This document shows, piece after piece, positions 9,001 through 52,825 of a DNA stretch of 64,000 nt. Below the pieces are notes generated by a model. That model saw only the letters and a program-made list of their open reading frames with translations, was not told the DNA's origin and did not search any database. This stretch comes from Rebecca billardiae RCC1528 (taxonomy: Eukaryota; Protista; Haptophyta), in NCBI GenBank assembly GCA_965240325.2, contig OZ251242.1:62001-126000 (forward strand), read 5' to 3'. The translations under genes and the position numbers were made by a program. Within the stretch, counting starts at the first letter, position 1, and every line of letters begins with the position of its first letter.

Positions 9001-9091
9001 GCTCAGCCTGGGTGTGGCGCACGGCGTGGCCGAGCCGCTGTGGGCGGCGCTGGCGAAGGCGTGCCGCCGCGGCTGGAGCGCGCTGCGCTGA
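1..9091 (+). CDS. Polycystin-1/PKDREJ-like membrane protein (REJ + GPS, ~5 TM, very long low-complexity loop); 5' end lies outside the window
   Basis: Frame is open from the window edge to TGA at 9089-9091. REJ-like segments (L.F.PGALSGGETYVFELTV, VNLPPYGGGL.V.P..GEALTTQF, PLSY.Y, VVVSDAWG). GPS motif CHYLDE...W.TDG...C...HLTQFA at ~2243-2413, followed by a TM helix. PKD1-like HPL...W motif at ~3195. Two terminal hydrophobic helices ending in EPLW. Confidence 0.75.
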   Translation, partial: RRVDASAPLEVDASASRDPNVPPAGAGGSHLVWAWDVRRASAPAGAGGGGVSALGPPLALPNGSRTASPVLRLPGGALGVGWYVASVTLSAPGLPPARASVAVEVVNGTGGPPLPTLSLAHLGGAASNPDWHALAPSSGRVVLQASLDAASRARAARGEESFAFEWRAYTLGAGGARLGAGLELADAGGVTTTGAALPTLAFRPGALSGGETYVFELTVRGSASREARAAVRVRVNLPPYGGGLAVRPAAGEALTTQFECEAAGWLDDVEDGADALPLSYAYAHALAVDDDGGDDGGDDAPGGGGAPSQALGRGGAGVAVLRGVRLPGGNRTLTVVVSDAWGGAASARAPVAVRPPPPSAALGVALRALAQPGGGPVPPPLLGGGAAVANASTVAELVAAYGALLDEARAAVARADAPDAKRLVGLLGWLLQYAGALGALARAGGDVSDLGGLVVALLNVTAGAAAVAPPTAEARAQWAAALVAALGGLGGAALPCAARASALAQAAQLVDGAAADASGLDEPTGRLAFSALGAALAGAAVACGVDGAAALEAAGADGAAALARALLARAAPSEPALALVSAPLNLTAARLHAPTQLALPLWLPGAGGAGGMLTPPALAAALSPSGALLAVDVVLLSAGASARTAGALGGGGASADGVEGGALALGTNGSAGSLVQRPLATSAFSVTLFDGGGGAAALSLDEAALAGAAGASAGAALNVSALPEPIILGLPPLPEGPLPGANASAAQCHYLDEGAGAWRTDGVAATPAPPELAALSVAVSGSVSVSASVSVQLFCGSTHLTQFAGLAPALGGGGGDGGGGGGGANGTEPDAGGPGAQGGAAFAVGAGAQSSVLTPALPAGRTQILPVVYSLGGAYALALLLALGAERRRRREWERWRRAALGAVSPADAERRSPPPTTAAAAAGAKLGGGAGRVLGVSRAARRPAAADGGGGVGAKGPVSCRRAASAASSGPSSPSEATAASSFANEQGWSWAKPPPAGLAAAALARRERRAAVSSSPASSSAERDSGDTDEPGAEGGGGGAALGAAEHPAAAGRGPRWGWWADEHPLGQLLRWQLARPVPPCAQLVHEAFGAAALQLAASCALHGGGGVARLLGLRGGAPAVAAAPLLLRAALCAAPAAPARAALGRVWALAAAGARRSTGARLQRALRALLDAQQHGEGGGGAGGGALGRVAAAAKPNASTGGGGAPHGPQPSADSRSGGRSAAAARAARMSRIREELGAGSASLRASPAGGAAPGGPLAVAGPESPLSPRAPGSGERVVPLDSAAPKRCGGGGRGSVSSVSSECSDGSEAAAAAAWGKEAEARGVLSPPGARGAGRVVPTGTAGSRARKPSRPGPPADASAEPGAAAAPPSLGAALRLRVSSGEGSQRASLAPSPRGMLMAPWTPSPGAERAQRPASLHAAEAEAEAEAAAEAPPRVARAARAAPAAAPAREARKGARRGSGGGAWTEERKEAAARTVAALLSAARASDADGGSVRHDVSVSMRVRTAGTRPARASALHTAPFGLVEPAPGPPSIVRPAPAAAPQPAPTVAAALAAARAAHAQPARAPPPPPATPPAAPAAAAAAAPQHDAGGCALHVPGTAVSGRGIVAPMQRRLQLPERCSDDDDDDDDEEEAGARGDGGSEGGGGGGVLAALRRTPPFASPWATSAEPSPFRRPRTSLEAAVGIRAPRSSMEPSAAPPDGGWRRRRPSAEELGVPRGGWRRARPSAEAGGAGAPRPHAGAAGAAAAAAAAALVAPARAHAASSSASSASSEDDEFRVGDDARQDAHGGADAEAAEEAEAAAEAEEAEETEGDTFDEEGGPGAAVGVPPRPRPRVGACAATAPSSFSRRAAARAAPSGACRTASNSFSRHQPGQCADACLLPERPESSRPASVALPPRASEGTAARSSNGSAPRSSGAGKTRRATFADEHGEQGGGAAAPAPSAAAAAAQPAASRARASHTAALADGGGGGAGDDGGGGAGRASSGGRDSSFGLGSSFGRERAPLPTPELPSSLPPVPTATRSRRTTEVGDGGGGGGGAGADRASSVGRGSSFGGGSSSGRERVPAAPGRSAWAPPPLAGLGAECSGAWAPPAARSRVEPELGQPQPQQPQRSPSPQKKPRKKRQQQAQQQAAAAPTAAAACAEEGAPSAAPARKPRRSRPSGPHHPPDAPRWTTDPPDGPTEHAWLQSVSGAGGGDDGPPHDGAAAERAAERVVRLERRRALRPASARPAEGARDDGPPPPSPEPNAGRLARARELAAAERETTAAAASAQPGGAPARAPAAAGSAAAMRNARPRSAAPPRGSRGLLVETAGGGAEQPPLLSPSAAANLSPPPRPPPAAAASARASGSSFSARPRPATASRSRSAAPPRGALALFAEAADGERPPLLSPGAAASLTPLPHPPPRHGRRAAWGTDHGAAEAGGESAPPSPPPSPPAARPPPRATPPAPPTALALLDAPVRAGRAQLPPLSAFAGAALPPLPAAAPPGGAQPAAGAPPPAAERAAAVLAPFAPSQPARSRVAPPPPPGAALLADGAVPADADDSDSGGEGARPPVRRSATLRSSISEATSSDLTSDAAELGGGSGRRASAAALAAADDSDSDSDAADAAATAAVHEEFGSGSAEEGSAGGRPSGGGRESRRGSNGSRRGSSGSSGRARHSRRERGPAAAPSVRFAPGSAPPQPAAAAAAAARARGPRGLSVQTSRRGAEQPPLLSPSAAAKLSPPPPRPPPPRAAGRGQVSPVRRGPPPPVAVAGAPSPGRRGPGFASGAAPSPGRGGPAGFAAGGAVSPGRARCTPPMARPTPRPPRPSEERGSSSGRGARAAVLGAARLLRAARRAAAPEAAAPAASPPLRITALPPGARGAQLLGLRHVVRLYGAGGTGDGELRAGSLRALMADVHDPITEVEERRLLRAIGVPRGAARPGAHALALQRWYGRARLVEGVEAACARWLPAPPHRAPLAWVASLAAFAAMCLLAVVSAGPLDSEQLWGALGAWALSLGVAHGVAEPLWAALAKACRRGWSALR

Positions 9092-32275: not shown

Positions 32276-35200
32276 TTACATGCCCAGGATCTGAGCACGA
32301 AGTTTGAGGAAGGCGGCCGGGCCGAGCGGCTTGGTCATGATGTCGGCCGGGTTCTCGGTGCCGGGGATCAAGAAGAGCTTGAAGGTGCCGGCGCGGGCGT
32401 GCTGACGGTTCCAGTGGTACTGGACGTCGATGTGCTTGGTGCGGTTGTGGTACTTCTCGTTGTCCGTGAGGTCCACCACAGCCTTGTTGTCCTCGAAGAG
32501 CTTGGTCGGCGCGAGCTGCGGGTAGCCGAGGTCGGTGAGCAGCTTGCGCATGAAGATGATCTCCTTGCCGGCGGAGGTGACGGCCATGTACTCAGCCTCG
32601 GTCGAGCTCAGAGCCGTCGTGCGCTGCTTCTCGCGGCGGCCGCTCACCGTCGAGCCGCAGAGGTGCATCACGTAGCCGGTGACAGACTTGCGCTCGTCGT
32701 GGAGGTCGTTGGCGTAGTCGGCGTCCACGTACGCGATGAGCGTGACGTCCGAGCCCGAGCGGAAGAAGAGGCCGAGGTTCGGCGTACCGGCGAGGTAGCG
32801 GATGATGCGCTTGGCAGCCTCGAGGTGCTTCTTGCCCGGCTTTGACATGAAGTGGGTGAGCGTGCCGACGGCGTAGGCGATGTCCGGGCGGAACTGCGTG
32901 ATGTGGATGAGCGAGCCGACCACGGAGCGGAAGAACGTCGTCGTCTCCGCGTCGAGCGCGTCCGACTCGGAGCACGGGCCGAGCTTGAGGCCCTCGGTCA
33001 TCGGCGTGTCGGACGTGTTGCAGTTCATGAAGCCCGTCTTCTCGAGGAGCTCGAGGATGTTCTTGGTGACGGTCACCATGATGCCGTCCTTGGAGCGCGT
33101 GAGCGTGGCCGACAGGTAGCCGTCGATGTCGGCCGTGATGGTCATCTTGTACGAGGATGTGATCTTCGAGATGAAGTTGTCGCAGGCGGTCGGGTCGTCG
33201 CTGTCGTCGAGGATGAGCATGTCGTCCACGTAGATGCACACGGCGATGATGCCCGACTGCGTGTTGAGGACATAGAGGCACGGGTCGGCCTGGCTCTGCG
33301 CGAACCCGTACTCCTTCATCCAGTCGTCGATCATGAGACGCCAGTTGCGGCCGGACTGCTTGAGACCGTAGAGGCTCTTGAGGAGGCGCAGCACGACGTC
33401 ACCCTTCGCCTTCGGCTTGTACCCGAGCGGCAGCTCGAGGTAGATCTCGTAGTCGATCGGCGCGTTGAGGTACGCCGTCGTGAAGTCGCCGTGGAAGAGG
33501 CGGCGCTGCTTGGCCGCGGCGATGGCGATGATCATCTTGAGAGTCTCGTAGCGGACGACCGAGGAGAACGTCTCGTCGTAGTCGATGCCCTCGATCTGCG
33601 TGAAGCCCTTGCCCACGACGCGGGCCTTGAACCGCTTGATGTTGCCCTTCTTGTCGCGCTTGATGTTGAACACGGGCGCCGCCTTCAGCGTGCGCATCCC
33701 CGGCTTGCGCGGCACCTCCACCCACGTGTTGTTGGCCAGGATGGAGGCGTACTCGGCGTCGAGAGCGGCGGCGAACTGCGTCGCATGCGGGCCGTTGAGT
33801 GCTTGCACCGCCGTCGGCGTGTCCGAGAGTCCGATGGAGAGCAGGAGCGCGTAGATGCGCGGCAGCTTGGAGTAAGTCGGCGACGCGACCGAGTTGACGT
33901 GTGCGCGCGCGCGCGTGCGAGATGAGGGCGGGTCGTCGTCGTTGAGCGCGTTGCCGACATCGAGGGAGTCCTCGGCGCCGGCGGCGTCGTCGTCAGCGTC
34001 TCCGACGTAGGCGTGCGGTGCGTCCCCCACCCGCTCAGCGTGTCCGAATGAGCCGGCGCCATCGCGGCGCCGCACGGCGCCGTGGGAACTTCCCCCATTA
34101 CCCACATCGGCAGCATGGAGGTCGAGCGGCGGCGGCGTCGGCGGCAGCTGCGGCGCGGCGGCGAGCGGGTCGCGCGCGATGTGAGCGGCGTCGGGGTGGT
34201 CGACGTAGAGCGTGTCCTCGTCGAAGCGCACGTGGTGCGAGATGATGAACATGTCCGGGACGATCTGGCCGTCGCCGGGCACGCGCACGATGATCGCCTT
34301 CGTGTAGCGCGTGCGGTTCTTGGGCGGGACGTTCACCATGTGGCCGTCGTCGCCGTGGCCGACGTAGACGCCCATGACGGCGCGCGGGTCGAGCTTCTTG
34401 AAGTGCGTGTTCGGCGGCACGACGTAGGCGACGCAGCCGAAGACACGCAGCTGAGCGAGATCTGGCGGGAAGCCGCGCAGGAGCTCGAACGGCGTCTTGT
34501 TGAACGTCACCGGCGTGGCGATGCGGCGGATGATGTACGCGGCGTGGCGCAGCGCGTCCTTGGCGTAGGCGTCGATGCGCAGCTTGGAGTGGAACAGGAT
34601 CGAGCGCGCCGCGTTGAAGAGCGTCTGGATGAAGCGCTCGGCGATCGGGTTGTGCTGCGGCGTGTCGGGCGGCGTGACCTGGTTGGGGGCGATGCCGTGC
34701 GCGCGGCAGATGCCCTCCCAGTCGGTCGAGTTGAGCTCGGGGGCGCCGTCGACGCGGAAGCGGCTGACGGTGCGGCCGTAGACCGACATGTCGTCGATGA
34801 AGCGTCGCATCGCCTCCGGTGCGTCCGAGCGGCGGTCGAGGAAGTAGATGAAGCCGGCCCGGGTGTAGTCGTCGACAAACACGATCACGTAGAACTTGGC
34901 AAAATCGTCCGGGTTCACGATGAACTTGCCGTCGACGTAGCCGGCGACGTCGACATGGACGAGCACGAACGCCTTCTCCGAGCGGGGCGACGTGGACGTG
35001 AACGAGTTGCGCTTCATCTTGGCGAGCGCGCACGAGCAGTCCGACTTGAGGTTGCGCGCGCCGAGGTGCTTGGATGCGGCGAGCGTGCGGTTGACGGCAG
35101 CTGCGTGAGCGTGGCCGAGCCGGAGGTGAGCGACGCGCGAGAGCTCGTCGGTGTCCTTGAACTCGACGCAGCACTCGTCGCAGAACGTGTCGTCGTCCGG

Positions 35201-38032
35201 CGCGAGGTCGGCGGTCTGCGAGGCCTGGTCCATGGTCCCGATGACGAGAGCGCCGTCGGACGTGGGCGGCTGCGCCGGCGGCGGCGGCAGCGAGGACTGG
35301 AGCGGGGCGGGCGGCACGTGGAGGCCGGACGCGGCGATGGTGGGCGACGGCGAGTCGTCGTCCGGGATGAAGACGGCGCATGCGAGATCGCGGCCGTGCA
35401 GAGGAACGAGCTTGTCGCCGTACAGCAGGTACCGGCCGCCCTGCGCGTGGATCGGGGTGGCGCCGGACATGAAGGTGGTCGGCGCCGCGAGCGAGATGAA
35501 CGAGATGCCGAGGCGGGTCAGCCAAGTGTCGCTCATGTAGAAGCCCGGGACGTCTGGAGAGAGCGGGACGTCCATGAGCGGCAGCGTGATGAGGTCGCCG
35601 TCGATCGAGCGCATGCCGAGGGCGAACGAGGCCGAGGTGTTGATCTTGATCCGCGTGCCGTTCGCCGCGCGCGCCTCCGAGAACTGGCGGAAGGACTTGG
35701 CGGCAAACCGAGAGAACGCGGTCGAGGCGATGGTGGTGTCCGCGCCGGTGTCGATCATGATCGAGATGCTCGCCTGGGCGATGTCGCCTGTGAACGGCGT
35801 GCCGATGGCGAAGGAGATCGTCGAGTGCACGTTCTCAATCTCCTCCGGATCGGCGAGCAACGGCTGCTGGATGCAGGTCGGGTTGATCGGGTCAAACGAG
35901 CGGGAGACGCCGCAGATGATGGGCGGGCCGGTGCGGGCGCAGCAGGTGACCGCGGTGAGGATCGAGATGATGGCGAGGACGGCGAGCGCGACGAGGAAGA
36001 GGAAGGCACCGTGCGACGACTTGAAGAGCGCGCGGAGCCGACCCTCGTGCTTGAACCGCGGCGGCGGCGGCTCGTACCGGACGATCAGGTCATCGATGTA
36101 GGCGCCGGCGTCACCGAAAGACCGTGCGCGATGGATCTCGGCCTCGGCCGCGGCGGCTGCGGCGAGGAACTCGTACGGGCTGAGCGTGAGCGGCTCTCCG
36201 GCGAGCTGGCCGAGGTGGCCGAGCGGGTAGGTGTAGTTGCCCGCGGTGGAGACGTCGTCCAGGCTGGGGCAGTCGTCGGACGTGTCCGAGGCCGCGTCCG
36301 AAGCCGAGGTCGTGGACGAGGGAGTGCACGGGACAAGGTCCGGCAGCTCATCGTCCGTCTCCGAGGCCGAGTCGGAGGCGGAGTCGTCGCGGTCGTCCGG
36401 GGGGTTGGCGAGACGGAACGGCTTGAGGTGGAACGGCTCGTAGGAGGCGGGCTTGCGGATGGACTGGCGCAACGCCATGATGAGCACATTCTGGCCGCGC
36501 TCGAGCTCGGCCGCCGTCGCGAGCTGGATCGGGGAACCGGCTTCAGACGCCGGCGGCGACGGCGAGTCGGCCTGCGTCGGCGGCGACGGCGGGCCGAAGG
36601 GCGGCGGCGGCGAGTTGGCCTGCGTCGACGGGCCGAACAGCGGCGGCGGCAGCGAGTAGAGCACCGGCTGCGGGTTGATGAGCGGCAGCGCCGGCTGCTG
36701 CGAGTCGGCGGGCGGCAGCAGCGGCGGCGAGTTGGTGAGCGCCGGCTGCGCGTTGGAGTGCGCCCGCGACAGCGGCGAGTCGGCGGGCGGCGGCGAGTTG
36801 GTGGGCGCCGGCGGCGGCGGCGGCGCGCCGGCGAGCTGCCGCGACGACGGCGTGAGGACGAGCGTCGGCAGCGAGTTGGAGCGCGCCTGCGACAGCGGCG
36901 AGTCGGCGGGCGGCGACGAGTCGGCGGGCGCCGGCGACGGCGCGTTGGCGTCGGGCGCCGCCGGCTGCGAGTTGGAGCCGGACGCCGAGCCCGAGACGGA
37001 GATGGCGTTGAGCGTCGGCGTGCCGTCCTGGATGAGCCGCACGCGCGTCGTGGTCGCCGACGGCTTCGCCCGCTGCGGCGTCGGCTGCGGCTGCGACTGC
37101 GAGGGCGCGGAGGGCACGCGCTGGAGCTTGTTGGACTTGTGAGTCGGGCGGCGCGCGCCGCCGGAGCGAGCGTCGGCTGCGGGCGTCGCGCCCGAGGAGC
37201 GCGAGGTGGACGTCTGGGGGCGGTTCGGGCAGTCGCGGTTCCAGTGCATGCCGCCGCAGTACTTGCACGGGGTAGGAGGCATGGATGCGCCGGGCTGGCC
37301 CTTGGAGGTGAGCGCGTTGACGGCCTGGCGGTTGGGGTTCGTGCCGTTGGCGGCGGCGGCGACGCGGTCGAGATCGTGCACGCGCTCGATGAGATCCTCC
37401 ACAGAGATGGGCTGGTCGTTCATCGTCGCGATCACCGAGCTGACAAAGGACGGGTTGCGGCCGTAGAGGTTCACGAGGATGACGACGAGCGTGAAGATGT
37501 CGTCCTTGATCTCGACGCCGCGCAGCTCCGTGGCGTTGGACATCACACGAGCAGCAAAGGTGTGGAAGCTCTCGCTCGGCGACATCTTGATCGAGAGCAG
37601 GGCGTACAGCTTGGCGACGAGCGAGGAGGGGCGGGAGCTGTTGCAGCGCACGTTGAGCGCGTTGACGAGATGAGACAGCTCGAGCCCGAGACCCGAGTGC
37701 TGCAACTGCGCGATGATCGGGTCGAGGATGCGAGGAGCGACCGCCTTGAGAAGCAACTGCACGATGAAAGCCTGCGTGCGCAGCTGCTTGGCCTGGATGG
37801 TGGCGGCGGCGGTGGACGGGGGGCAGACGATGGGCTTGTCCGCGCCGGTATCGTCCTTGCCCGGCTCGAGGGGCGAGGACGGGTTGGAGAACGCGAGCGC
37901 GACGTCCATGTCCGGCTTCGACGTGACCATGACCACAAGAACGGAGATGGCCGTGCGGAGGTCCTGCGGCTTGAGGACGAGAGCTCGCGGCGGGAGCTGG
38001 TCACGCATGTCGCCACCCGGCGGCTCCGCCAT
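32276..38032 (-). CDS. Copia Gag-Pol polyprotein (1918 aa)
   Basis: Zn knuckle CKYCGGMHWNRDC; protease IDTGA; HLRLGH and integrase VHVD...RVDGAPE...NPIAER; RT KARVVG.GF.Q, LYGLKQSGRNW and YVDDML; RNase H YVDADYA...STEAEY...EDN...ADIMTK. Confidence 0.96.
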   Translation of the reverse strand: MAEPPGGDMRDQLPPRALVLKPQDLRTAISVLVVMVTSKPDMDVALAFSNPSSPLEPGKDDTGADKPIVCPPSTAAATIQAKQLRTQAFIVQLLLKAVAPRILDPIIAQLQHSGLGLELSHLVNALNVRCNSSRPSSLVAKLYALLSIKMSPSESFHTFAARVMSNATELRGVEIKDDIFTLVVILVNLYGRNPSFVSSVIATMNDQPISVEDLIERVHDLDRVAAAANGTNPNRQAVNALTSKGQPGASMPPTPCKYCGGMHWNRDCPNRPQTSTSRSSGATPAADARSGGARRPTHKSNKLQRVPSAPSQSQPQPTPQRAKPSATTTRVRLIQDGTPTLNAISVSGSASGSNSQPAAPDANAPSPAPADSSPPADSPLSQARSNSLPTLVLTPSSRQLAGAPPPPPAPTNSPPPADSPLSRAHSNAQPALTNSPPLLPPADSQQPALPLINPQPVLYSLPPPLFGPSTQANSPPPPFGPPSPPTQADSPSPPASEAGSPIQLATAAELERGQNVLIMALRQSIRKPASYEPFHLKPFRLANPPDDRDDSASDSASETDDELPDLVPCTPSSTTSASDAASDTSDDCPSLDDVSTAGNYTYPLGHLGQLAGEPLTLSPYEFLAAAAAAEAEIHRARSFGDAGAYIDDLIVRYEPPPPRFKHEGRLRALFKSSHGAFLFLVALAVLAIISILTAVTCCARTGPPIICGVSRSFDPINPTCIQQPLLADPEEIENVHSTISFAIGTPFTGDIAQASISIMIDTGADTTIASTAFSRFAAKSFRQFSEARAANGTRIKINTSASFALGMRSIDGDLITLPLMDVPLSPDVPGFYMSDTWLTRLGISFISLAAPTTFMSGATPIHAQGGRYLLYGDKLVPLHGRDLACAVFIPDDDSPSPTIAASGLHVPPAPLQSSLPPPPAQPPTSDGALVIGTMDQASQTADLAPDDDTFCDECCVEFKDTDELSRVAHLRLGHAHAAAVNRTLAASKHLGARNLKSDCSCALAKMKRNSFTSTSPRSEKAFVLVHVDVAGYVDGKFIVNPDDFAKFYVIVFVDDYTRAGFIYFLDRRSDAPEAMRRFIDDMSVYGRTVSRFRVDGAPELNSTDWEGICRAHGIAPNQVTPPDTPQHNPIAERFIQTLFNAARSILFHSKLRIDAYAKDALRHAAYIIRRIATPVTFNKTPFELLRGFPPDLAQLRVFGCVAYVVPPNTHFKKLDPRAVMGVYVGHGDDGHMVNVPPKNRTRYTKAIIVRVPGDGQIVPDMFIISHHVRFDEDTLYVDHPDAAHIARDPLAAAPQLPPTPPPLDLHAADVGNGGSSHGAVRRRDGAGSFGHAERVGDAPHAYVGDADDDAAGAEDSLDVGNALNDDDPPSSRTRARAHVNSVASPTYSKLPRIYALLLSIGLSDTPTAVQALNGPHATQFAAALDAEYASILANNTWVEVPRKPGMRTLKAAPVFNIKRDKKGNIKRFKARVVGKGFTQIEGIDYDETFSSVVRYETLKMIIAIAAAKQRRLFHGDFTTAYLNAPIDYEIYLELPLGYKPKAKGDVVLRLLKSLYGLKQSGRNWRLMIDDWMKEYGFAQSQADPCLYVLNTQSGIIAVCIYVDDMLILDDSDDPTACDNFISKITSSYKMTITADIDGYLSATLTRSKDGIMVTVTKNILELLEKTGFMNCNTSDTPMTEGLKLGPCSESDALDAETTTFFRSVVGSLIHITQFRPDIAYAVGTLTHFMSKPGKKHLEAAKRIIRYLAGTPNLGLFFRSGSDVTLIAYVDADYANDLHDERKSVTGYVMHLCGSTVSGRREKQRTTALSSTEAEYMAVTSAGKEIIFMRKLLTDLGYPQLAPTKLFEDNKAVVDLTDNEKYHNRTKHIDVQYHWNRQHARAGTFKLFLIPGTENPADIMTKPLGPAAFLKLRAQILGM

Positions 38033-41710: not shown

Positions 41711-42838
41711 CTAACGACTGAAGGTGTGGCACTGCCGTCGCTCCCTCTGCGCGGCGAGCTCGCGCATCGCCGCCTCCGAGCCCGCCATGGCCTCCAGCGC
41801 GTGCCGCGTGCACGGGTGCTTCGCGTAGCGGCTCCGGAGCGTGCGCATCGCGGCGGCGCGCGCGCCCTCGAGCTCCCGCGTCCGGTTCCACACTCTGTAG
41901 TCGAGCAGCCGGCCCAGGTCGCGCGGGTACGCCGCGCAGTGCATGGCGAAGGAGCGCTGCAGCCCTTGCCACGCGGGCACGCGCGCGCCGCGCACGAGGT
42001 CGTCGCGCAGCCAGATCACGTCGAGGGCGGCCACGCGGTGGATGATGGAGTAGCCAAACTCGGCGGCGAGCAGCCGCCACGTCTCGAGCGAGGCGCCCCA
42101 CGCGCAGTTGGCAAACGCCGAGCCGTACCCGCCGCCCGGACCGCCCGGCAGCATGGTCGGGTCGTCGAGCGTGAAGGCGTCCCCCTGGCGCCAGTTCACG
42201 TTGAACTCGGTGACGATGACGCGCGGCCGGTACCCGCCCTCGAGGATGGCGCGCAGCACGAACGTGTCGTGTGAGTCCATGTCGCACGAGACGAGGTCTG
42301 GCGCGCGCGGCACGCCGTACTGCGCGAAGAGCCGCGCGACGTTCGTGCGGTCGAGGAAGTGCGCGTGCAGATTGATCGACGCGTTCGACCAGCGGCTGTC
42401 GAGCAGCAGCCCGTCGAAGCCGTGCTCGTGCAGGAAGAGCGTGTTCGCGCCCGAGCCGCCCTCGTACGTGGCAGAGTTGAAGCCAAACTCGACGTAGTAC
42501 CGGTTGGTCACGCCGACGCGGTCAAAGACGCGCATCAGGACGGCGTCCTGGTTGGCCTGCGAGTGCACCTTCGCGCGGGGCGGGATGGTCGGCAGCAGCT
42601 CCATCCAGTCCGCCGGCGCGTCGTCCACGGGCGCCGGCCGCGGCCGCCACGCGCGCAGCCTGGCCACCCACTCGTCGGCCTTGCTGCTCCTCACCTGCGG
42701 CGCGCGCGGCCCGTCGGCCACTCGGTCGGCCTCGCGCGGCCCGCCCGGGCTGCTGGGCTCGGTCGCGAGAGCGTGCGTGGCGCCTGCCGCCAGCGCCACA
42801 AGTGTGCGCCACGCGTGCTGCCGCCGTGGCGCAGCCAT
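41711..42838 (-). CDS. FkbM/Methyltransf_21-like SAM methyltransferase with a signal peptide or anchor
   Basis: SQANQD.VL..VF..VG..N.YYVEFG, ANT..L...G.DGLLLD, DL.S.D.DS.D..VL.AIL...YRPRVIV.E.N and WGASL. Confidence 0.75.
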   Translation of the reverse strand: MAAPRRQHAWRTLVALAAGATHALATEPSSPGGPREADRVADGPRAPQVRSSKADEWVARLRAWRPRPAPVDDAPADWMELLPTIPPRAKVHSQANQDAVLMRVFDRVGVTNRYYVEFGFNSATYEGGSGANTLFLHEHGFDGLLLDSRWSNASINLHAHFLDRTNVARLFAQYGVPRAPDLVSCDMDSHDTFVLRAILEGGYRPRVIVTEFNVNWRQGDAFTLDDPTMLPGGPGGGYGSAFANCAWGASLETWRLLAAEFGYSIIHRVAALDVIWLRDDLVRGARVPAWQGLQRSFAMHCAAYPRDLGRLLDYRVWNRTRELEGARAAAMRTLRSRYAKHPCTRHALEAMAGSEAAMRELAAQRERRQCHTFSR

Positions 42839-43223: not shown

Positions 43224-43612
43224 CTAGGCGTCCGCCCGCCGCGCGGCTGGCTTCTCGAAGAGGTAGTGCGAGACGTACCACACGTTGCCGCCGTCGTACC
43301 CCCACAGCTCGGCGCACGCGAGGTAGAAGGCGCGCCAGCGCGCCCACCACAGCGCCGTCTCTCCGGGCGGGTACGTGGCGCGGAGGATCTGCAGCACCTC
43401 CGCCTTGCGCGCGTCCATGCGCTGCAGCCACGCCTCGGCGGTCATCTGGTAGTGCCAGCCCGAGACGCGCCACTGGCGCAGCAGCGTGAGGTCGCGCTGG
43501 AAGTAGTGCAGCAGGTCGTCCGACGGCATCGTGCCGCCCGCGAAGAAGTAGCGCGCCTGCAGCGGCGGGGGAGGCGGCGCGGCGCGGCACGCGCGCGGCG
43601 CGGCTCGGCTGA

Positions 43613-43667
<55 letters not shown>

Positions 43668-45361
43668 TGCGCGTGCGCTGCGCGTGCGCTGCGCGTGCGC
43701 GGCGCGTGCGCTGCGCACCATCCAGTCCGCCTCGCTCTTGGCGATGAAGTGGTAGGGCGTGGTGCGGTGCACGAAGATATGCACAAACAGACGGCCGCCC
43801 TCGCGCAGCGCCTGCGCGCGCGAGCGCACACGCACGCACGGCGGCGGCGGCGGCGGCGGCGGCGGGCGGCGGCGGCGTGAGCGCGCGTGGCGCAGCAGCG
43901 GCGGCGCGCAGCGCACGGCACAGCGCGGGCGCCCGCGCCCAGCCCGCCCTGCCCCGCGCAGCGCACGCCCGCGCGGCCCCCGCGCACCTCCGCGACGTTT
44001 CCGAGAAGCTTCTGGTAGTTCTTCATATGCTCCAGCATCTCAAGCGACACGACGCGGTCAAAGAGCGGGCGGCCGCCCACGCCGCGCAGCGCGCCCAGCG
44101 CCTCGCGCGCCGCGTCGGCGAAGGGGGCGCGCGAGACGTCGCACGTGACCACGTCGATGTTGCTCAGCCCGCGCCGCTTCGCGTCCGCGAGGATGTGCGC
44201 GCGCTGCGAGTGCGAGTTGGACACGCCGACGACAAAGGCCGACGGCAGACGGGACGCGTAGTGCAGCGCGCCCGAGCCCCAGCCGCAGCCGAGGTCGAGG
44301 ATCGCCATGCCGCCCGCCATGCCGCTCCGCGCCATCACCTCGTCGAGCGAGTCGATCTCCGCCTGCGGCAGCAGCGCCGCCGCGTCGCGCGCCCGCGCGC
44401 CCGGCCTGAACTTGCAGCACGAGTACTTGCGCGCCGGGCCTGCGCGCGCGGTGGGGCGTGCGCGGAGGGGCGCGCGCGGTGGGGCGCGCGCGGAGGGGCG
44501 TGCGCGCGCGCGCGCGCGGCGGTGTGTCGATGGCGCGGGTGAGCCGAGTCGACTGCGCCGTGCGCGCGTGTGCGTGCGCGTGCGTGTGTGTGGGAGCACG
44601 TGCGTATGCGCACGTGTGCGTGTACGTGCGTATGCGTGTGCGCGTGCGCACATGCGCACATGCGCGCGCGCGCGCGTGTCGCGCGCGTGTGCGCGTGCGC
44701 GCGTGTGCACGCGTGCGCGCGTGCGCGCGCACCGAGGCAAATGTCGTAGAACTGCGCGCTCACCTCGTAGTGCTGCTCGTTGGCGGCGGTGGTGTGCACC
44801 GCGATCGGCATGGTCTTGAGCTCGTCCACGAACGCCTGCGTCAGCTCCTGCGGCGCCCGCCCGCCACGGCACGGCACAGAAGGGGGCGGGCGACGGCGCG
44901 CGCGAGGCTCAGCGCCGCGCCGCGCCGCGGGCGCGCGCGCCGGCGCCCGCGCGCGGCGCGCGCGCGGCGCGGGCGCGGCGCGGGCACCTGGCTGCGCTCG
45001 ACGCCGGGCGCCTCCGCCTCCATCTCGGCGAGCTTCTGCGCGCAGAACTTGCGGATCGCGATCCGCGTGAGCGCGTCCGGCACCAGCCCGCGGTCGAGCA
45101 TCGCGTGCCCCGCGTGCCGCACCGCGTCCCACGCGCCGCGGCGCGCGGCGAGCGCGCGCAGCGTGGACGCGCCGCCGAGCGCGAGCGTGGCGATGCCGAC
45201 GGGAAGTGCGGCGAGCCCGCCCGTCGCGGCGACGGCGAGCGCGGCGGGCGCGACGACGTAGGTGAGCGCGCGGCTCAGCACGCCGCCGCCCGCCGCGCCG
45301 CCCCCGCCCGGCTCCGCCGCGCCCGCGTCGTACAGCTCGCCGCCGCCGCGCACGCGCGAGA

Positions 45362-45395
<34 letters not shown>

Positions 45396-47955
45396 GCCGC
45401 CGCCCCCGCCGCCGCCATTCTTCTGCGGCTTGGCGTAGAGCAGCTGCTGCACGTCGATGTGCCGCGCGGCGAAGCCGGCCTCGCAGTACGCAAAGTAGTA
45501 GTCGAACTTGCGCGCGAAGCACCCGTCGAACGCGCCGCGCGTCGACACGCCGCCGGCCGCGTTCGCCTCGACCGACGGCGCGGCGCGCAGCGCGCCGACC
45601 GCCGGCAGCGCGGCCGCAAACGCGCGCCGCCAGATGGCGAGCGTCTTGGCGTACGAGAGGCCGAGCGAGCGCGTGCGCGCGTGCACGGGCTGCAGCCCCG
45701 CGCGCGCCGCGCACGCCGCCAGCACGCGCGGGCACGGCAGGTGGCTCCCCGGGAAGATGTGCTTCCGGATAAAGTCGGAGCCCCTCGAGTAGGAGGCGTA
45801 ACGGCCGTCTGGGACAAGGATCGCCTGGATGGCCGCGCGCCCGCCCGGCCGGAGCGCGCCGGCGATGGCGGCGTAGTAGGCGGGGAGGTAGGCGTGGCCG
45901 ACGGCCTCGACCATCTCGATCGAGAGCACCTTGTCGAACGACCCCGCGCCGAACTTGGCCACCGCCTCGCGGTAGTCGCACAGCAGCAGGCTGACCTTGG
46001 CCTCCAGCCCGGCCGCCTTGACGCGGGCGCGCGCCTCTTCGAGCTGCTCGACCGAGAGGGTGAGGCCGACCCACTCGCAGCCGAAGCGCTGGACGCAGCG
46101 GATGGCGGCGGAGCCCCAGCCGCAGCCGATCTCGAGCACGCGGTCGGTGGGCTGCAGCTCGAGCAGCGCCGCCATCGCGTCGAGCTTCGCCAGCTGCCCT
46201 TCATGCAGCGCCGAGCCCGCGCCCACGCCGCACGGCGGCAGCGCGCGCTGCAGCGCGACGTCGTCCTCGAAGAGCGCCGACGAGTAGGTCATCGTCGGGT
46301 CGAGGAAGGCGGCGAACATGGCGTTGGAGAGGTCGTAGTGCGCGGAGACGTTGCGCCCCGAGCCCTTGCCCAGCGAGTTGGGCTGCAGCGCGTGCAGCCC
46401 CGCGTTCCACAGCCGCGCCACGCTCAGCCGCGCCACGCTGAGCGCGAGCGGGGAGTCGAACTGCGCGCCCGCGGCGGCGGTGGCGGCCGCCGTGTTCCAG
46501 AGGGCGGCGCGGAAGAAGTCGACGAGGTCGGGGCCGACGGAGAGCTCGCCCGCGATGTACGCCTCGGCGAGGCCCATCCCCGGGTCAGCGAGCATGCGCC
46601 ACAGCGCGCGCTCGTGCGTCGCGCGCACCACCACCTCCTCGCAGCCGCCCCAGGCGCCGTTGTTTGCGTCACCAAAAGCGCCCGCCACGCGCACCGCGGC
46701 CGCGTTGGGCGCGGCCGCGGGGCCGCACGGCGCGCCGTCGCCGAGCAGCAGCTCGGAGCCGTCGGGGAGGACGAGGCGCGCGGTGCCCGCGCGGAAGAGC
46801 GAGCCGAGCCCGCGGCGCAGCAGCGGCACCACCAGCCAGCGCGTGAGCGCGTGCAGCTCGGGCGAGCACGGCGGCGGCGGCGGCGGCACGCGCGCGCCCA
46901 GAAGCTCGGCGACGCGCGCGCCCGAGCGCACGCCGTCCTCGTGGAAGCCGGCGTCCGTCCACGCGCCGCACGCGTACACGCCGCCCGCGCCCTGCGCGGC
47001 GCCGAGCGCGGCGCGCGCCGCGACCGCGTCCGTCGCGAGGCTCGGGTGCGCCATGCGCATGCGCCGCCACACGTGCCCCGCGCCCACCAGCCCGGGCGGC
47101 GGGTTGAGAGTCACAAGCACGTGCTCGCGCCCCGCGGGGCCGGTGACGGCCTGCAGCGCGTTCGCCCAGTACGTGACGGTGACGGACGGGGCGGCGTCGG
47201 CGGTGGCGCTGGGGCGGGAGAGGTAGTTCCACGCCGCCCAGCACCGCGCGTCCGCCGGCATCGCGCGCACGTCCGAGTGCACCACCACGTCGTTCTCGGT
47301 GCAGTCAAACTGCGCGAGCGCGGACGCGAGAGGCGCGGCGCCGGGCGCGCGCGTGGCGCCGTGGCGGAGGATGGCGGCGGCGTCGCGCGCGTGCACGGCG
47401 AGGACGACGGCGTCGAAGGCGCGGCCGGCGCACAGCGCCGCGCCGCCCTCGTCGAGCAGCGTGAGCGCGCGCCCGCCGCCCGCCGCCTCGCCGCCGTCCA
47501 CGATCGCGCCGACGCGCGCGCCCGTCACCACCGCGCCGGGCGGCAGCGCGGCATGCAGCCTCGCCACGTAGTCGGCGGAGCGGTGCTTGGGCGTGCGCCA
47601 GCGCGGGCGCGTGCGCTGCAGCATGCAGTGGTTGTCGAGGAACGCGAGCACCGCCAGCATCGAGAAGCCGTCCACACCCTCCCGCGGCGCCGACCAGATG
47701 CTCGCCACCATCGGGTAGAAGTAGCGCGCGCGGAACGAGGCGGAGTAGCGCCGCGCGCCCAGCCACTGCGCGACGCTCTCGAGCGCCGCGGCGTTCTGCG
47801 AGGCGACGGGGGCGGCGCGCGCGGCGCGGACGTACGCGCGCGCGTCGCGCTCAAAGGCGAGGATGCCGAGGAAGAGCGCCCAGCGCGACGGCGAGAGCAG
47901 CGAGCCCCAGCTCGGGAACGGCGCCTTGGACGACCATTCAAACAGCGGCGCGGAC

Positions 47956-47991
<36 letters not shown>

Positions 47992-50608
47992 GCAGAGGAC
48001 GGCTGCTGCTGCACGCTCGCGGACAGGCTCATGTCCGACTGGATGGTGAGCACGCCCAGCTCGTCGAAGAGCTGCGTCAGCCGCGGGTAGTTGAGCAGGT
48101 TGAACACCTGGAAGCCCACGTCCACCCGAGGCCCGTCGCCGTCGCCGCCGTCGCCGCCGCCGCCGCCTCGGCCGAGGCTGAGTGTGTGCGCGTGCCCGCC
48201 CGCCCGCCCCGCGTCCGCCTCGAGCAGCGTGACGTCGTGCGAGTGGCGCAGGTAGTACGCGGCGGCGTGGCCCGCGATGCCCGAGCCGACCACGGCGACG
48301 GAGGGGCGGCGCGGGGGCGAGGGCGCGCCGGCAGAGCCGCGCGCGCCCGCCGCCGCCGTGCCGCCGCCGGCTGGCGAGGGCGGCGCCGGCGGCGCGCCCG
48401 CCGCGGCCGCGCCCGCCGCGGCCGCGAAGACGCGCGCGGGCGCAAAGCCCGCCGGCGGCGCGGGCGCGCCGCCGCCGCCACTGCCGCCGCCCGGCGCGCC
48501 GCCCGCCCCGCCGCCCGCCGGCGCGGCGTCGGCGGGCGCGCTCTGCGGCGCGCGCCGCTGCACGCGCGCGCGCCGCGCGCCGCCGCGCGCCGCGCGCCGC
48601 GCGCGCACGCCGAGCGCGGCGGCGCACAGCGCGAGCGCCGCGCACGCCGCCGCGGCCGGCGCCGCGCCCACGCCGCCGGGCGGCGCGGCGCCGCCCGCGC
48701 CGAGCAGCGCCGCGCCCAGCGCGAGCGACAGCGCGAGCACCGCGGGCCCGCCGTGCACGAGCGCCGCGAGCGCGCGCGACGCGGCCGTTTTTGTGCCCTT
48801 GGGGTGCGGGAAGAATGTGGCGCCGCGCCAGAGCAGCATGGCGGCCTGCGCGTGGATGCGCCACTGCACGGCGTGCGGCAGCAGCGGCGCGGTGCGCAGC
48901 AGCCACAGCGCGCCGCGCGCGTCGAGCGGCCGCGCGCGCGCCATGCTCACACCCGCGGCGAACACGCGGAGCTGCGGCGGCGGCGGCGGCTGCGGCGCCC
49001 CCGGCGGCGGCTGCGGCGCCCCCGCGGCCGCGCCGCCGCCGCCGCCGCCGCCAGCCGGGCCGATGGCCGGGCACACGCCGCCGCCGCTGCCGCCCTCGCC
49101 GTGCTCGAGCAGCTCGACGCGCAGGCTGAGCGCCTCCGCGGGCGCGGCCATCGTCCACACCATGGCCTGCGCCATCGGCATGAAGGGCGACACGTGCATC
49201 GCCTTGCCCACCTGCACGCGCACGCCGTCCAGCGCCTCGGGCAGCCGGGGCGGCGCGGCGGGCTCGGCGGTGGTATTGGCGGCCGGCTCGGCCGCGCCGC
49301 GCGCCGCGCCCCCCGCGGCCGGGTGCTGCGCGAGGCGCACGCCCTCGCCCCCCTCCGCGCCGCCCATCAGCACGTATAACGCCTCCTCCCCCCACGGCGT
49401 GTTGGACACCTCAAGCACCGCGCCGCGCAGCAGCGGCGCGTGCGCGCGCAGCGCGGCGGAGACGCGCTGCGCGGACGCGGAGGGGGCGTGCTCGGCCGAG
49501 GCCGCGCCGAGCGCGGCGCCGAGCGCGGCGCCGATCGCGCCCGCCTCGGCGCCGCCGCCATCGCCGCCGCCGCCGCCGCCGTCCGCGCCGCCGCCGCCGT
49601 CCGCGCCGCCGCCGCCGTCCGCGCCGCCGCCGCCGTCCGCGCCGCCTTCGCCTTCGCCCTCGCCCGCGCGTGCGTCGGTGGTGAGCAGGTAGAGCGAGAC
49701 CGGGTTGAACGTGTACCCCGCGTGGCGCAGGTGCGTGAGCAGCAGCAGCCGGCACGCGCCGCCCTCCGCGGGCGCGCGCAGCACCTCCGCGCGCGCGGCC
49801 GCGCTCGGCGCGCGCTCGGCGAGCAGCGCGCGCACGCGGCGCGCGAGCGCGGCCGCGGGGTGTTCCGAGGGTGCCGCGCCCGCCGCGCCGCCGCCGAGCG
49901 AGCGCAGGTGGTCCTCCGCGCGGAAGGCGAGCGGCGCGGCGCGCGAGCCGTCCGTGCACAGCAGCCAGCGCGGGCACGGCAGCGCGCCCGCGCCCACCTC
50001 GTCCAGGTCGAGGCACACCCATGGCAGCCGATACGAAAACGCATGGGCCACGCCCTCGGAGGAGGTGCCGGCGGTGGGCGCGCGCGCGTGCCAGACCGTG
50101 CCGGCGTACACGCACGAGCGCGGGCGCGCGGCGCGCGGCGCGGGCGCGGCGGGCGCGGCGGGCGCCGCGCCCGCGCCGCGCGCGCCGGCCGCGCCGCCAG
50201 CGGCCGAGCGCGCGGCGGACGCGGCCGCGCCGGCCGCGGGCGCGTCGGCGGCCGCGCCGCCGCCCGCGTTGGCGTCGGCGTTGGCGGCGACGGCCTCCGC
50301 CGCCGCGTCCTCCGCGAGCTGCTGCTCGCGCACCTGCCGCACCAGCTCCCAGTGCGCGCCCAGCGCCGCGCCCATCGACGGCAGCGCCGTGTACGCCACG
50401 CCGTGCGCCGCGCACACGGCCGCCACGATCCGCTGCACCGCGCGCAGGTGGCAGTGGTTGACGGTTGGGAACATGTGGTGCGCGACTTGCAGGTTGAGCC
50501 CGCCGGAGAAGAAGAAGACGAAGGAGGCGCAGCACCGCGCGTACAGCGCGGAGAGCCGCGCGCCCAGCGCACAGCCCGCGCCCGAGCCCTCCGCCGCCGG
50601 CACCGCGC

Positions 50609-50641
<33 letters not shown>

Positions 50642-52166
50642 GCGCGCCCTTGCCCGCACCCGCCGCGTCGGCCGCGTCGGCCTCGGAGTCGGAGGCGGAG
50701 GAGGCGGCGTCGGAGGTGAGGTGCTCGTCGAGCAGCGGCGCGCGCGGCACCGCGCCGCCGCCGCCCGGCCGCCGCGCCTTCGCGCCGAGCACGGCAAAGT
50801 CGTTCGCCGTGCGCGCCTGGTGCTCGTAGAAGCAGAGCGGAGCGCCGCCCGCGCTCACGAGGTCGGACGCCACGGAGTCGGACGCGGCGGAGGAGGAGGC
50901 GGCGGAGGAGGCGGAGGAGGCGGAGGCGGCGGCTGGCGGGAGCGAGGCGCGGGAGGAGGAGGAGGCGGAGGAGGGCGGCGCGCTGGGGGAGCACGCGCCG
51001 GCCGAGGGGCACGGCACGGCGGACGGCGCGCCGCCGAGCGCGCCCAGCGCCGCCGCGCCGCCCGCGCGTCCCACGGGCGAAGCGGCCGACGCCGCCGCCG
51101 CCTTTGCGCGCGCGGCGGCGACGGCCGCCTCGGCGGCGTCGGCGGCGTCGGGCGTGAGGTGCGCGACCTGCGTGATCGCCATGAACGTGACCGACGAGAT
51201 CGCCGCGGGCACGCCCGCCCACACCGCCGCGCGGCCGAGCGGCCACACGGCGAACGGCCAGCCGTACGACAGCCACAGCAGCGCGGCCCAGCGACACACG
51301 TACTGCGCGCGCTCGGCGGCGGAGAGCGGCATGGCGTCGACGGCGTAGTTGTACGAGCCGGTGAGGAGCAGCCGCGCGGGCGCGAGGAGGTGCAGCCCGA
51401 GCGGCACCGCCACCGCCCAGAGCAGCGGCAGCAGCACCACCGCCGCGCCCGTGGGCACGCGCCGCCAGCGGTGCAGGTGCGCGTAGTCCGGGTCGTGTCC
51501 CGGAACGTTCGTGTGCACGTGGTGCCCGATCACGTGCTGGTGCGCCCAGTTGTACGGCGCGGCGATGGAGAAGCCGAGCGCGGTGCCGAGCGTGTTCACC
51601 CACGCCCGCGTCGACAGCGCCCCGTGCGACGCGTCGTGGAACACGTTGAACGTCGCCGCCGAGCCGACGAGCGGCAGCGCGAGCAGCGACCACCAGCGTC
51701 CGGCAAACCACGCGGCCGCGCAGCACGCGTACGCGGCGAGGAGGGCGAGGACGAGCGCCCACTTGGGGCCGTCGGCCTTGGTCACCGCGCGCAGGCTCAC
51801 GCCCTTCGCCGCCGCCAGCCCCTCGAAGTGCGCGCGCACCGCGCCGCGCACGTCGCGCGCGAGCGGCGAGAGCTCGGTCCACTCGAACGGCGGCGCGCCG
51901 GACGGGCGCGGGACGTCGTCGGGGTGCACGGAGGCGGGGTCGATGCGGTAGCGGGCGAGGGTGCGCTGCAGCGCGCCGCGCTCGCTCAGCGCGTGCACGC
52001 TCTCGAACAGCTCCGTCGCGTCGCGCGCGTACGCCATCCGCAGCATCTGCGCGCCGCCCGGGTGCGTCGACTCGAACGGCGCGAGGTCGTAGAGCGCGCC
52101 GTGGATGAGGCTGAGCGCGCGCCGGCCGGGCGCCGGAGCGCCGGCGGGGCGCGGGCGGGCGTCCAT
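43224..52166 (-). CDS. Multidomain fatty-acid-modifying enzyme: cytochrome b5 - front-end desaturase - DUF1365 - FAD oxidoreductase - CFA-synthase-type methyltransferase - TM linker - CNMT-like methyltransferase (~2723 aa); exons 52166-44988, 44847-44733, 44439-43988, 43811-43719 and 43556-43224
   Basis: HPGG (cyt b5). His boxes HDASH, HVIGHH and QVAHH. DUF1365 motifs Y.G.VWHAR...[32 protein letters not shown] and IH.QA..L. FAD domain [28 protein letters not shown] and GAW...GFHEDG. CFA domain [37 protein letters not shown] and FIRKHIFPG. Second methyltransferase [54 protein letters not shown] and W..F..ACAEL.GY.GG. Four canonical GT-AG introns keep the frame. Confidence 0.88.
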
Positions 52167-52825
52167 CGGCGGCGGGCGGTCGGGCGGAGGGTGGGCTGGC
52201 GCGGAGCGCGCGCGAGTGTGCGCAGGCGAATTGCCACGTGCGAATGTCGTGTGTGCCGGGGCTGGCCAAGCCACGCGAGGCCGCGCGAAAGGCCGAAGGC
52301 GTCTCGGCAGCAGCTGGATACCTTTGGCAGCCGCCGCCGCCCGGACGCGCTCGCTTTTCTACGGGGTGCGTACGCGCCGCGCCCAGTGCGGCGCGCCGGC
52401 GCCCGGAGCGCTGCGCACGTCACCTTTTCGCCAATCGCTGAGCCGCATCGCGGGTAGGTCGAGCCGCGGAGCCCAGGCGTACGCACCCCGTGCGCCCGCT
52501 AGTTGGAAGTCCGATGCAGCATCATACTCGGCTTTGATCTCGCGCGCGCGCGAGCCGGCACCTTCTCCAGTGTTCGCTTCGCCACCACACGCTCCGAGCG
52601 ACCCCGACTCCCGTCGGCGGCTGTGCCGGGCGAGTTCTCGAGGAGAGTCTGAGATCGAGCTGCTGCCGACCACTCGACCAGCCTCATGAGCAATCTAAAT
52701 CGATCACGATGGCAGAGCGATTCGGCGGCCCGCGTGGCTACAGTAGTGGCAGACCGCCTTGGGCGCTCTGTCTCGCGCGCCGCCGTGCCGCCCACACCGC
52801 ACGCCGCGCGCGCGGCGCGCACACG

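Follow-up and report, generated by a model that had tools for sequence, protein, structure and literature searches.

A predicted six-module fusion gene in the haptophyte Rebecca billardiae and a candidate one-protein route to methylated furan fatty acids

Gene model and domain order

The stretch of DNA analyzed here, called the window, comprises 64,000 nucleotides (nt) of contig OZ251242.1 of the haptophyte alga Rebecca billardiae RCC1528, and the gene in question lies on its minus strand. The predicted protein carries, from N to C terminus, a cytochrome b5 domain (b5), a front-end desaturase (Des), a DUF1365 domain, a flavin adenine dinucleotide (FAD) oxidoreductase of the amine-oxidase type (AO), an S-adenosylmethionine (SAM) methyltransferase of the CMAS family (MT1, written CMAS in the architectures below) and a second methyltransferase resembling coclaurine N-methyltransferase (CNMT), designated MT2. 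The gene was modeled as five exons with GT-AG introns, giving a coding sequence of 8,172 nt with one terminal stop and a predicted product of 2,723 amino acids (aa) and 276 kDa, of which 22% is Ala and 12% Gly. Most of it is encoded by a minus-strand open reading frame (ORF; 44841..52274) of 2,477 codons without a stop. The end of this long ORF also encodes, in frame, the N-terminal part of MT2, and further downstream three other frames hold pieces of this second class-I/CMAS methyltransferase. The coding pieces were placed by tblastn with full-length homologues and the intron borders were read from the sequence; the four introns measure 140, 293, 176 and 162 nt, and all have GTGC...GCAG ends. 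Intron 2 (44440-44732, minus strand) consists mostly of CA or CGCA-type microsatellite-like repeats. The spliced MT2 aligns almost without gaps to its counterpart in Polarella glacialis (55% identity over 364 aa) and to that of the closest relative found (67% over 380 aa), which validates the splice junctions. The guanine-plus-cytosine (GC) content is 75-83% in the gene region and 73.6% in the window overall.

The features of the gene are listed in Table 1. Domain matches are from a Pfam scan of the long ORF, and residue numbers are those of the ORF unless model residues are indicated. An initial annotation made from the DNA alone had described a 7.2-kb stop-free frame followed by four spliced exons; its start, end and domain boundaries agree with our model within a few tens of bases, and the six domains that it listed, in the same order, pass the hidden Markov model thresholds of Pfam.

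Table 1. Exons, domains and hydrophobic segments of the predicted fusion gene, in positions of the window
Feature	Position	Strand	Evidence and remarks
Exon 1	52166-44988	-	7,179 nt, stop-free, ATG at 52166; b5 through CMAS plus N-terminal part of MT2 in one frame
Exon 2	44847-44733	-	Collinear with homologues
Exon 3	44439-43988	-	SAM-binding core of MT2
Exon 4	43811-43719	-	Located by tblastn with homologues
Exon 5	43556-43224	-	Includes TAG stop at 43226-43224
Cytochrome b5	51984..52118	-	Pfam PF00173, residues 53-97, E 2.5e-8; HPGG and second His
Front-end-type membrane desaturase	50331..51695	-	Pfam PF00487 (FA_desaturase), from residue 194, E 1e-20
DUF1365 (UfaO family)	48780..50129	-	Pfam PF07103, to residue 1159, E 2.8e-34
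Two hydrophobic, membrane-anchor-like segments after DUF1365	48600..48773	-	Kyte-Doolittle scan; model residues 1132-1189
FAD amine-oxidase-type oxidoreductase (AO, UfaD-like)	46887..48302	-	Pfam PF13450 (NAD_binding_8), residues 1328-1406, E 1.4e-10; GSGIAG dinucleotide-binding motif
CMAS-family SAM methyltransferase (MT1, UfaM-like)	45411..46673	-	Pfam PF02353, residues 1974-2278, E 6.5e-62
Hydrophobic linker preceding MT2	45159..45281	-	Kyte-Doolittle scan; model residues 2296-2336
Second methyltransferase (MT2; CNMT/LIME1/FufM-like)	43227..45101	-	End of exon 1 plus exons 2-5

The same fusion in other organisms

Homologue searches were seeded with the first cleaner hit and with the cleaner region of the window protein; the full protein as a query was swamped by low-complexity words. 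A protein of 2,154 aa from Polarella glacialis, deposited as 'Cytochrome b5 heme-binding domain-containing protein', reads b5-Des-DUF1365-AO-CMAS-MT2 and is collinear with the gene model from end to end, and JL720_11029 of Aureococcus anophagefferens (1,777 aa) has the same six-domain architecture. An uninterrupted ORF of 2,117 codons with the full architecture occurs on a Tara Oceans scaffold and on a second marine metagenome scaffold, both at 63.6% GC, where the other five frames contain 35-85 stops each. The whole architecture is also present on a contig of 49.5% GC (L002). Desaturase through MT2 can be followed, with a stretch of N as the sole interruption, on a 6.1-kb contig from a Joint Genome Institute (JGI) sample, which may be a culture transcriptome to judge from its sample numbering. 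All of these relatives align collinearly with the window model, with 40-55% identity per domain. Its closest relative (56-67% identity) is a transcript-sized contig of 4.8 kb that carries AO-CMAS-MT2 in one ORF and aligns almost gaplessly to the spliced model; no annotated protein from the genome of the window itself turned up in the searches. The relatives from Polarella, Aureococcus and the metagenomes and transcriptomes share the domain order of the window gene and are all functionally uncharacterized; they are shorter because they do not have its Ala/Gly/Ser-rich inserts. On L002 a lone TAG (L002:894-896) breaks a frame of 2,115 codons within a strongly conserved segment of the desaturase, for which a sequencing error, RNA editing, a variant genetic code or a pseudogene are all possible explanations.

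The search for this architecture in algae and protists that the initial annotation had proposed thus recovered it, and the architecture is not unique to Rebecca billardiae but is already present, unannotated, in public databases. The accompanying statement that the fusion was undescribed stands insofar as the searchable literature, including papers that mention DUF1365, yielded no description of it, but it does not extend to the databases, where the architecture is already deposited as uncharacterized proteins.

Parts of the fusion, in several combinations, were found elsewhere. Symbiodiniaceae have b5-Des-AO-CMAS-MT2 without DUF1365, many marine transcriptomes have CMAS-MT2 (about 850 aa), and plants have AO-CMAS (about 865 aa). 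Among the database representatives there are Des-DUF1365 and DUF1365-AO-CMAS proteins and one Des-DUF1365-CRAL/TRIO protein (P0044, 1,021 aa) with its lipid-transfer domain at the C terminus. The oomycete Pythium oligandrum has yet another order, AO-CMAS-DUF1365 (P0043, 1,380 aa), which suggests independent fusion events. Of the 5,498 representative proteins that match the DUF1365 profile, most are about 250 aa long and few are long fusions.

One gene or a chance reading frame

Since the DNA is so rich in GC, the model has to be weighed against the possibility that there is no single polypeptide, and that adjacent genes on the same strand (for example b5-Des-DUF1365, AO-CMAS and MT2) are merely joined by a stop-poor frame of approximately 80% GC DNA. 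Very long chance ORFs do exist here, and because the antisense strand of the gene carries one of 1,424 codons, ORF length alone is no evidence in this DNA. Some other organisms have split versions, in which Des-DUF1365 stands on its own or contigs of about 4.2 kb carry AO-CMAS-MT2, and the contig of the closest relative starts just upstream of the oxidoreductase. In addition, GC is as high at each of the three codon positions of the Ala/Gly/Pro-rich linkers as it is in the introns, and for these linkers we rejected periodicity of GC at third codon positions (GC3) as proof of coding.

Against separate genes, the domain blocks of exon 1 share one frame over 7.2 kb, and three of the four introns in the final 1.8 kb shift the frame. 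The four inter-domain linkers contain no stop and no ATG, save one Met exactly at the start of the MT2 homology, which leaves DUF1365, the oxidoreductase and CMAS without separate start codons and the units upstream of them without a stop. The first in-frame stop past CMAS is found, in the wrong frame, within the second exon of MT2 itself. GC3 lies between 0.92 and 1.00 in each 60-codon window from the ATG through exon 1, and introns and upstream DNA are flat by codon phase. The same fusion occurs in other species as full-length ORFs in DNA of 50-64% GC, where chance is no explanation for it, and the contig of the closest relative has an ORF that is open to its 5' end. Given the ordered and significant domains, the shared frame, the GC3 values and the near-gapless collinearity with homologues, the locus is predicted to be one gene and not a GC-driven chance frame, and we consider separate genes highly improbable.

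The antisense ORF (45105-49379, plus strand) lies in a frame with a single stop across exon 1. The Pfam scan gave no match for it or for the other long ORFs that overlap the gene.

Features of the modules

The b5 domain begins 17 residues past the initial Met, without an N-terminal extension before it. It has the HPGG motif, and the desaturase has three His boxes, the third of which is QVAHH with Gln in the first position, as in the front-end b5-fusion acyl-lipid desaturases (delta4, delta5 and omega13). Identity to the characterized front-end desaturases is only about 15-19% in a structure-based alignment, and the window module differs from them in being fused to four further enzymes. It retains all of the family-invariant residues in an alignment and contains two low-complexity inserts (about 85 and 70 aa) on either side of a conserved motif. 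The best structural matches among reviewed proteins were acyl-lipid omega13, delta5 and delta4 desaturases, with a sphingolipid delta8 desaturase only at rank 30, although the b5-desaturase model is of low confidence (predicted local distance difference test, pLDDT, 62) and this ranking carries little weight.

The DUF1365 module contains the motifs DHLRS, FNP, EVSNTPW and HVSPF.PM and retains every column that is invariant among 67 homologues; it also has Gly/Asp/Ala-rich loop inserts. An AlphaFold2 model of it is beta-rich, with a predicted template modeling score of 0.79 and a core pLDDT above 90. Searches of solved structures by sequence and by Foldseek found no relative of this domain. A wide structural search gave only matches with Z scores of 5-6 to small calycin-like ligand-binding barrels (OlmO spirocyclase, nitrobindin and Rv2717c), and these are a lead only, because the scores fall below the stated noise level. 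The oxidoreductase is 40% identical to a homologue (P0001) in which the matching region is Pfam Amino_oxidase.

When MT1 was compared with solved cyclopropane synthases, the residues at the positions of C139, E239, H266 and Y317 of E. coli Cfa were S, E, Q and Y. Of the canonical bicarbonate ligands of E. coli Cfa and CmaA1, MT1 therefore has Ser and Gln in place of Cys139 and His266 and keeps Glu239 and Tyr317. Gln at the His266 position was found in 78 of 78 bacterial cluster CMAS genes, in all of the algal fusions and in the plant AO-CMAS proteins examined. We considered this substitution as a marker of chemistry other than cyclopropanation and rejected it; because the plant proteins share the Gln, it marks the subfamily and not the product, and MT1 could still form cyclopropanes. 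For the MT2 of the Polarella fusion, the best solved relative is the coclaurine N-methyltransferase 6gkv. An NCBIfam scan of the ORF gave nothing beyond cyclopropane-synthase matches below threshold; NCBIfam has no Ufa-specific model.

Bacterial clusters and methyltransferase subfamilies

We searched 80 bacterial DUF1365 loci with the domains taken one by one. The order AO-DUF1365-CMAS on one strand was present in at least 76 of the 80, and in 78 the oxidoreductase immediately upstream of DUF1365 matched that of the window. About 65 loci had a second methyltransferase as a neighbor, on the downstream side in about 28 and on the upstream side in about 26, and none of the 80 loci had a desaturase match. 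The two methyltransferases of the clusters are distinct, with median scores of 192 versus 58 bits for the CMAS type and 65 versus 289 bits for the MT2 type, and the spliced window MT2 is 44-46% identical to the MT2-type genes. A maximum-likelihood tree separated the CMAS and MT2 clades with 100% support and placed each window domain in the expected clade, beside its closest relative. In this tree the MT2 sequences of eukaryotes cluster together (93% support), and the plant CMAS domains fall in the clade of the window CMAS (100% support), within which the branching was not resolved. By this sequence comparison each of the four predicted window domains is of the same subfamily as its counterpart in the conserved four-gene cluster of bacteria. 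The 'cyclopropane synthase-like', DUF1365 and LIME proteins of plants are part of one conserved module.

Several background statements in the initial annotation can be judged from these data. A second methylase does accompany the bacterial genes in most of the loci, in the form of the MT2-subfamily neighbor, and the plant homologues found by homology search fuse only the oxidoreductase and CMAS. The bacterial trio of oxidoreductase, DUF1365 and CMAS is a conserved cluster as had been claimed, but the claim does not carry over in full to Cereibacter sphaeroides (R. sphaeroides), in which the UfaM gene sits outside the ufaD-ufaO operon (PMC7380195) and a further operon gene is dispensable, as discussed below.

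Comparison with known systems

In bacteria the pathway UfaM, UfaD, UfaO and FufM has been worked out experimentally. UfaM methylates cis-vaccenate chains to 11Me-12t-18:1, the flavoenzyme UfaD desaturates this to the 10t,12t diene, the DUF1365 protein UfaO is the furan-forming enzyme and uses O2 to give 9M5, and FufM methylates 9M5 to 9D5 (PMC7380195). The roles that the initial annotation had given to the four enzymes match this paper and a later one (PMC10940516). In Rhodopseudomonas palustris, deletions of RPA2569 (ufaM) and RPA2570 (ufaO) have been described and RPA2571-2568 cloned as a block (PMC7380195); by elimination, we take RPA2571 to be ufaD. The enzymes of Cereibacter sphaeroides and R. 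palustris (FufM from R. palustris) are of the same four types as those of the window gene, but they are separate proteins and not one polypeptide. The order also differs, as the initial annotation had noted, being AO-DUF1365-CMAS in bacteria versus DUF1365-AO-CMAS-MT2 in the window, and only the window gene has an N-terminal b5-desaturase, large low-complexity inserts and hydrophobic linkers.

Arabidopsis has AT3G23510 (UFAMD1, AO-CMAS), AT1G30130 (UFAO1, DUF1365) and AT4G33110 (FUFM1/LIME1) as three separate lipid-droplet proteins, and the CNMT-like LIME1 is 38% identical to FufM (PMC10940516). In Chlamydomonas, CFA1, CFA2 (CPLD27, 'coclaurine N-methyltransferase') and the DUF1365 gene Cre06.g269300 are likewise separate and are induced by singlet oxygen in a manner that requires SAK1, and a CRAL/TRIO gene is among the other SAK1-dependent, singlet-oxygen-induced genes (PMC4067076). 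Both sets are homologues of the same four enzymes and share the AO-CMAS fusion with the window gene; unlike it, they are spread over three genes with no attached desaturase, and their products are only hypothesized. The co-localization on lipid droplets in Arabidopsis and the co-induction by singlet oxygen in Chlamydomonas suggest that the enzymes act together. The plant cyclopropane fatty acid synthase (AO-CMAS) shares the core of the window protein, which is more than a two-domain enzyme in that b5, desaturase, DUF1365 and MT2 are added.

A candidate route to furan fatty acids

Because the literature assigns enzymes of these types to UfaD, UfaO, UfaM and FufM, furan fatty acid synthesis is the best reading of the module set. 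We think it fairly probable that the locus is one nuclear gene of an alga with a very GC-rich genome, and that its predicted membrane-associated protein follows the bacterial route and turns lipid-bound acyl chains into furan fatty acids with one or, more probably, two methyl groups. In such a scheme the desaturase, supplied with electrons by its own b5 domain, would introduce a cis double bond into an acyl chain that is bound to a lipid. MT1 would methylate this bond and shift it, and the flavoenzyme would add a second bond to give a methyl-branched conjugated diene. DUF1365 would then insert one oxygen atom from O2 and close the furan ring, to which MT2 would add a second methyl group. The order of the modules in the protein does not match this order of reactions. 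Hydrophobic segments were detected by Kyte-Doolittle scan in the desaturase, after DUF1365 and before MT2, which suggests that the hydrophobic linkers hold all of the modules at one membrane or lipid-droplet surface.

Several points weigh against this interpretation. The transcript structure is a prediction, and in-frame introns may be hidden in low-complexity stretches, although the fusion would survive short ones. The role of the desaturase module is a guess, because the bacterial clusters have none, and the Symbiodiniaceae versions do without DUF1365. The chemistry of MT1 cannot be read from its residues, because cyclopropane fatty acids are known products of plant AO-CMAS fusions that belong to its subfamily and share its Gln. 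The connection to the characterized proteins RSP2144, RSP1091, RSP1090 and RPA0924 would run through the bacterial cluster and published identities. A further gene of the R. sphaeroides operon, RSP1089 (402 aa), is presumably CMAS-like. Its deletion left furan fatty acid synthesis unchanged (PMC7380195).

A real fusion with a different product has to be considered, namely a cyclopropane, cyclopropene or mid-chain methyl-branched fatty acid, with AO-CMAS acting like a plant cyclopropane synthase or like the methylene-forming methyltransferase and flavin reductase pair of actinomycetes. The AO-CMAS proteins of Sterculia and cotton make dihydrosterculate, and BfaA/BfaB make 10-methyl fatty acids. 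The plant proteins of about 865 aa are clear homologues whose CMAS domains share the clade of the window domain and the E/Q/Y signature of MT1, and one database labels a Symbiodinium homologue 'ufaA1'. Such a product would, however, leave DUF1365 and the CNMT-like MT2 without a role, and these two adjoin AO and CMAS in bacteria and have been fused repeatedly, in varied orders, in eukaryotes; DUF1365 is moreover the domain shown to form furans (PMC7380195). On balance we judge a cyclopropane or methyl-branched product unlikely. The enzyme might also act on sphingoid bases, where desaturation, C9-methylation and further desaturation would yield the 9-methyl conjugated polyene long-chain bases of haptophytes. 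Sphingolipid delta8 desaturases are found among the front-end desaturases with a fused b5 domain, and the sphingolipid C9-methyltransferases of fungi are CMAS-family enzymes. Haptophyte glycosylceramides contain 9-methyl-d18:4(4,8,10,12) and C19:3(4,8,10) bases (PMC6315552), which have the methyl-branched conjugated diene motif in common with the product of UfaD. This substrate is harder to reconcile with the acyl-lipid character of the best, if low-confidence, structural matches of the desaturase, and DUF1365 and MT2 would again be idle. The four-gene module is also conserved across many bacterial phyla, most of which, as far as we know, lack sphingolipids, and a sphingoid role appears to us rather improbable.

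If the protein does make furan fatty acids, the fusion could serve as a natural 'Rosetta stone' for the pathway in marine algae. A 2025 review traces the furan fatty acids of fish to plants and algae and derives the methylated furan forms from polyunsaturated fatty acids, notably linoleic acid, by lipoxygenase or monooxygenase pathways that depend on the species (PMC11945187). The fusion would instead imply that marine algae follow the bacterial route of methylation first, flavin desaturation and DUF1365 oxygenation and not the long-proposed lipoxygenase route, with a dedicated b5-desaturase making the precursor bond and all five steps taking place on a lipid-bound chain in one membrane protein of 276 kDa; we hold this wider reading to be evenly balanced between true and false. 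Should it be true, the recurrent and independent fusions of Des to DUF1365, one of them with CRAL/TRIO, would point to a direct coupling of the di-iron desaturase and the DUF1365 oxygenase.

Furan fatty acids are potent scavengers of radicals and singlet oxygen that pass up the food chain from algae and plants to fish and humans. To our knowledge, the proven biosynthetic genes are bacterial only, and homology is the basis for the candidates in plants and algae. One gene that joins all four enzyme types with a desaturase is strong guilt-by-association evidence for a eukaryotic pathway and a candidate for the way in which marine algae make antioxidant furan lipids. It would also offer a single clonable unit for pathway engineering and a handle on the mechanism of DUF1365. 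What is new here is the six-module fusion with its added desaturase; the kind of pathway is already known from bacteria.

Neighboring genes

None of the neighbors of the fusion gene in the window is lipid-related; they include a giant ORF with an REJ domain, an ARMT1-like protein, a Ty1/copia-type polyprotein and a protein with RCC1 repeats. The REJ ORF (32-9091, plus strand) is an open frame of 3,019 codons, the first 350 residues of which match REJ (E 1.4e-15) and the rest of which has no Pfam match. The fusion gene is followed on its own strand by an ORF of 375 aa (41711-42838, minus strand) that begins like a signal peptide and matches no Pfam family. The polyprotein (32276-38032, minus strand) is an uninterrupted ORF of 1,918 aa with an integrase core, a retroviral SH3-like domain and an RVT_2 reverse transcriptase, and appears to be the intact polyprotein of a Ty1/copia-type retrotransposon.

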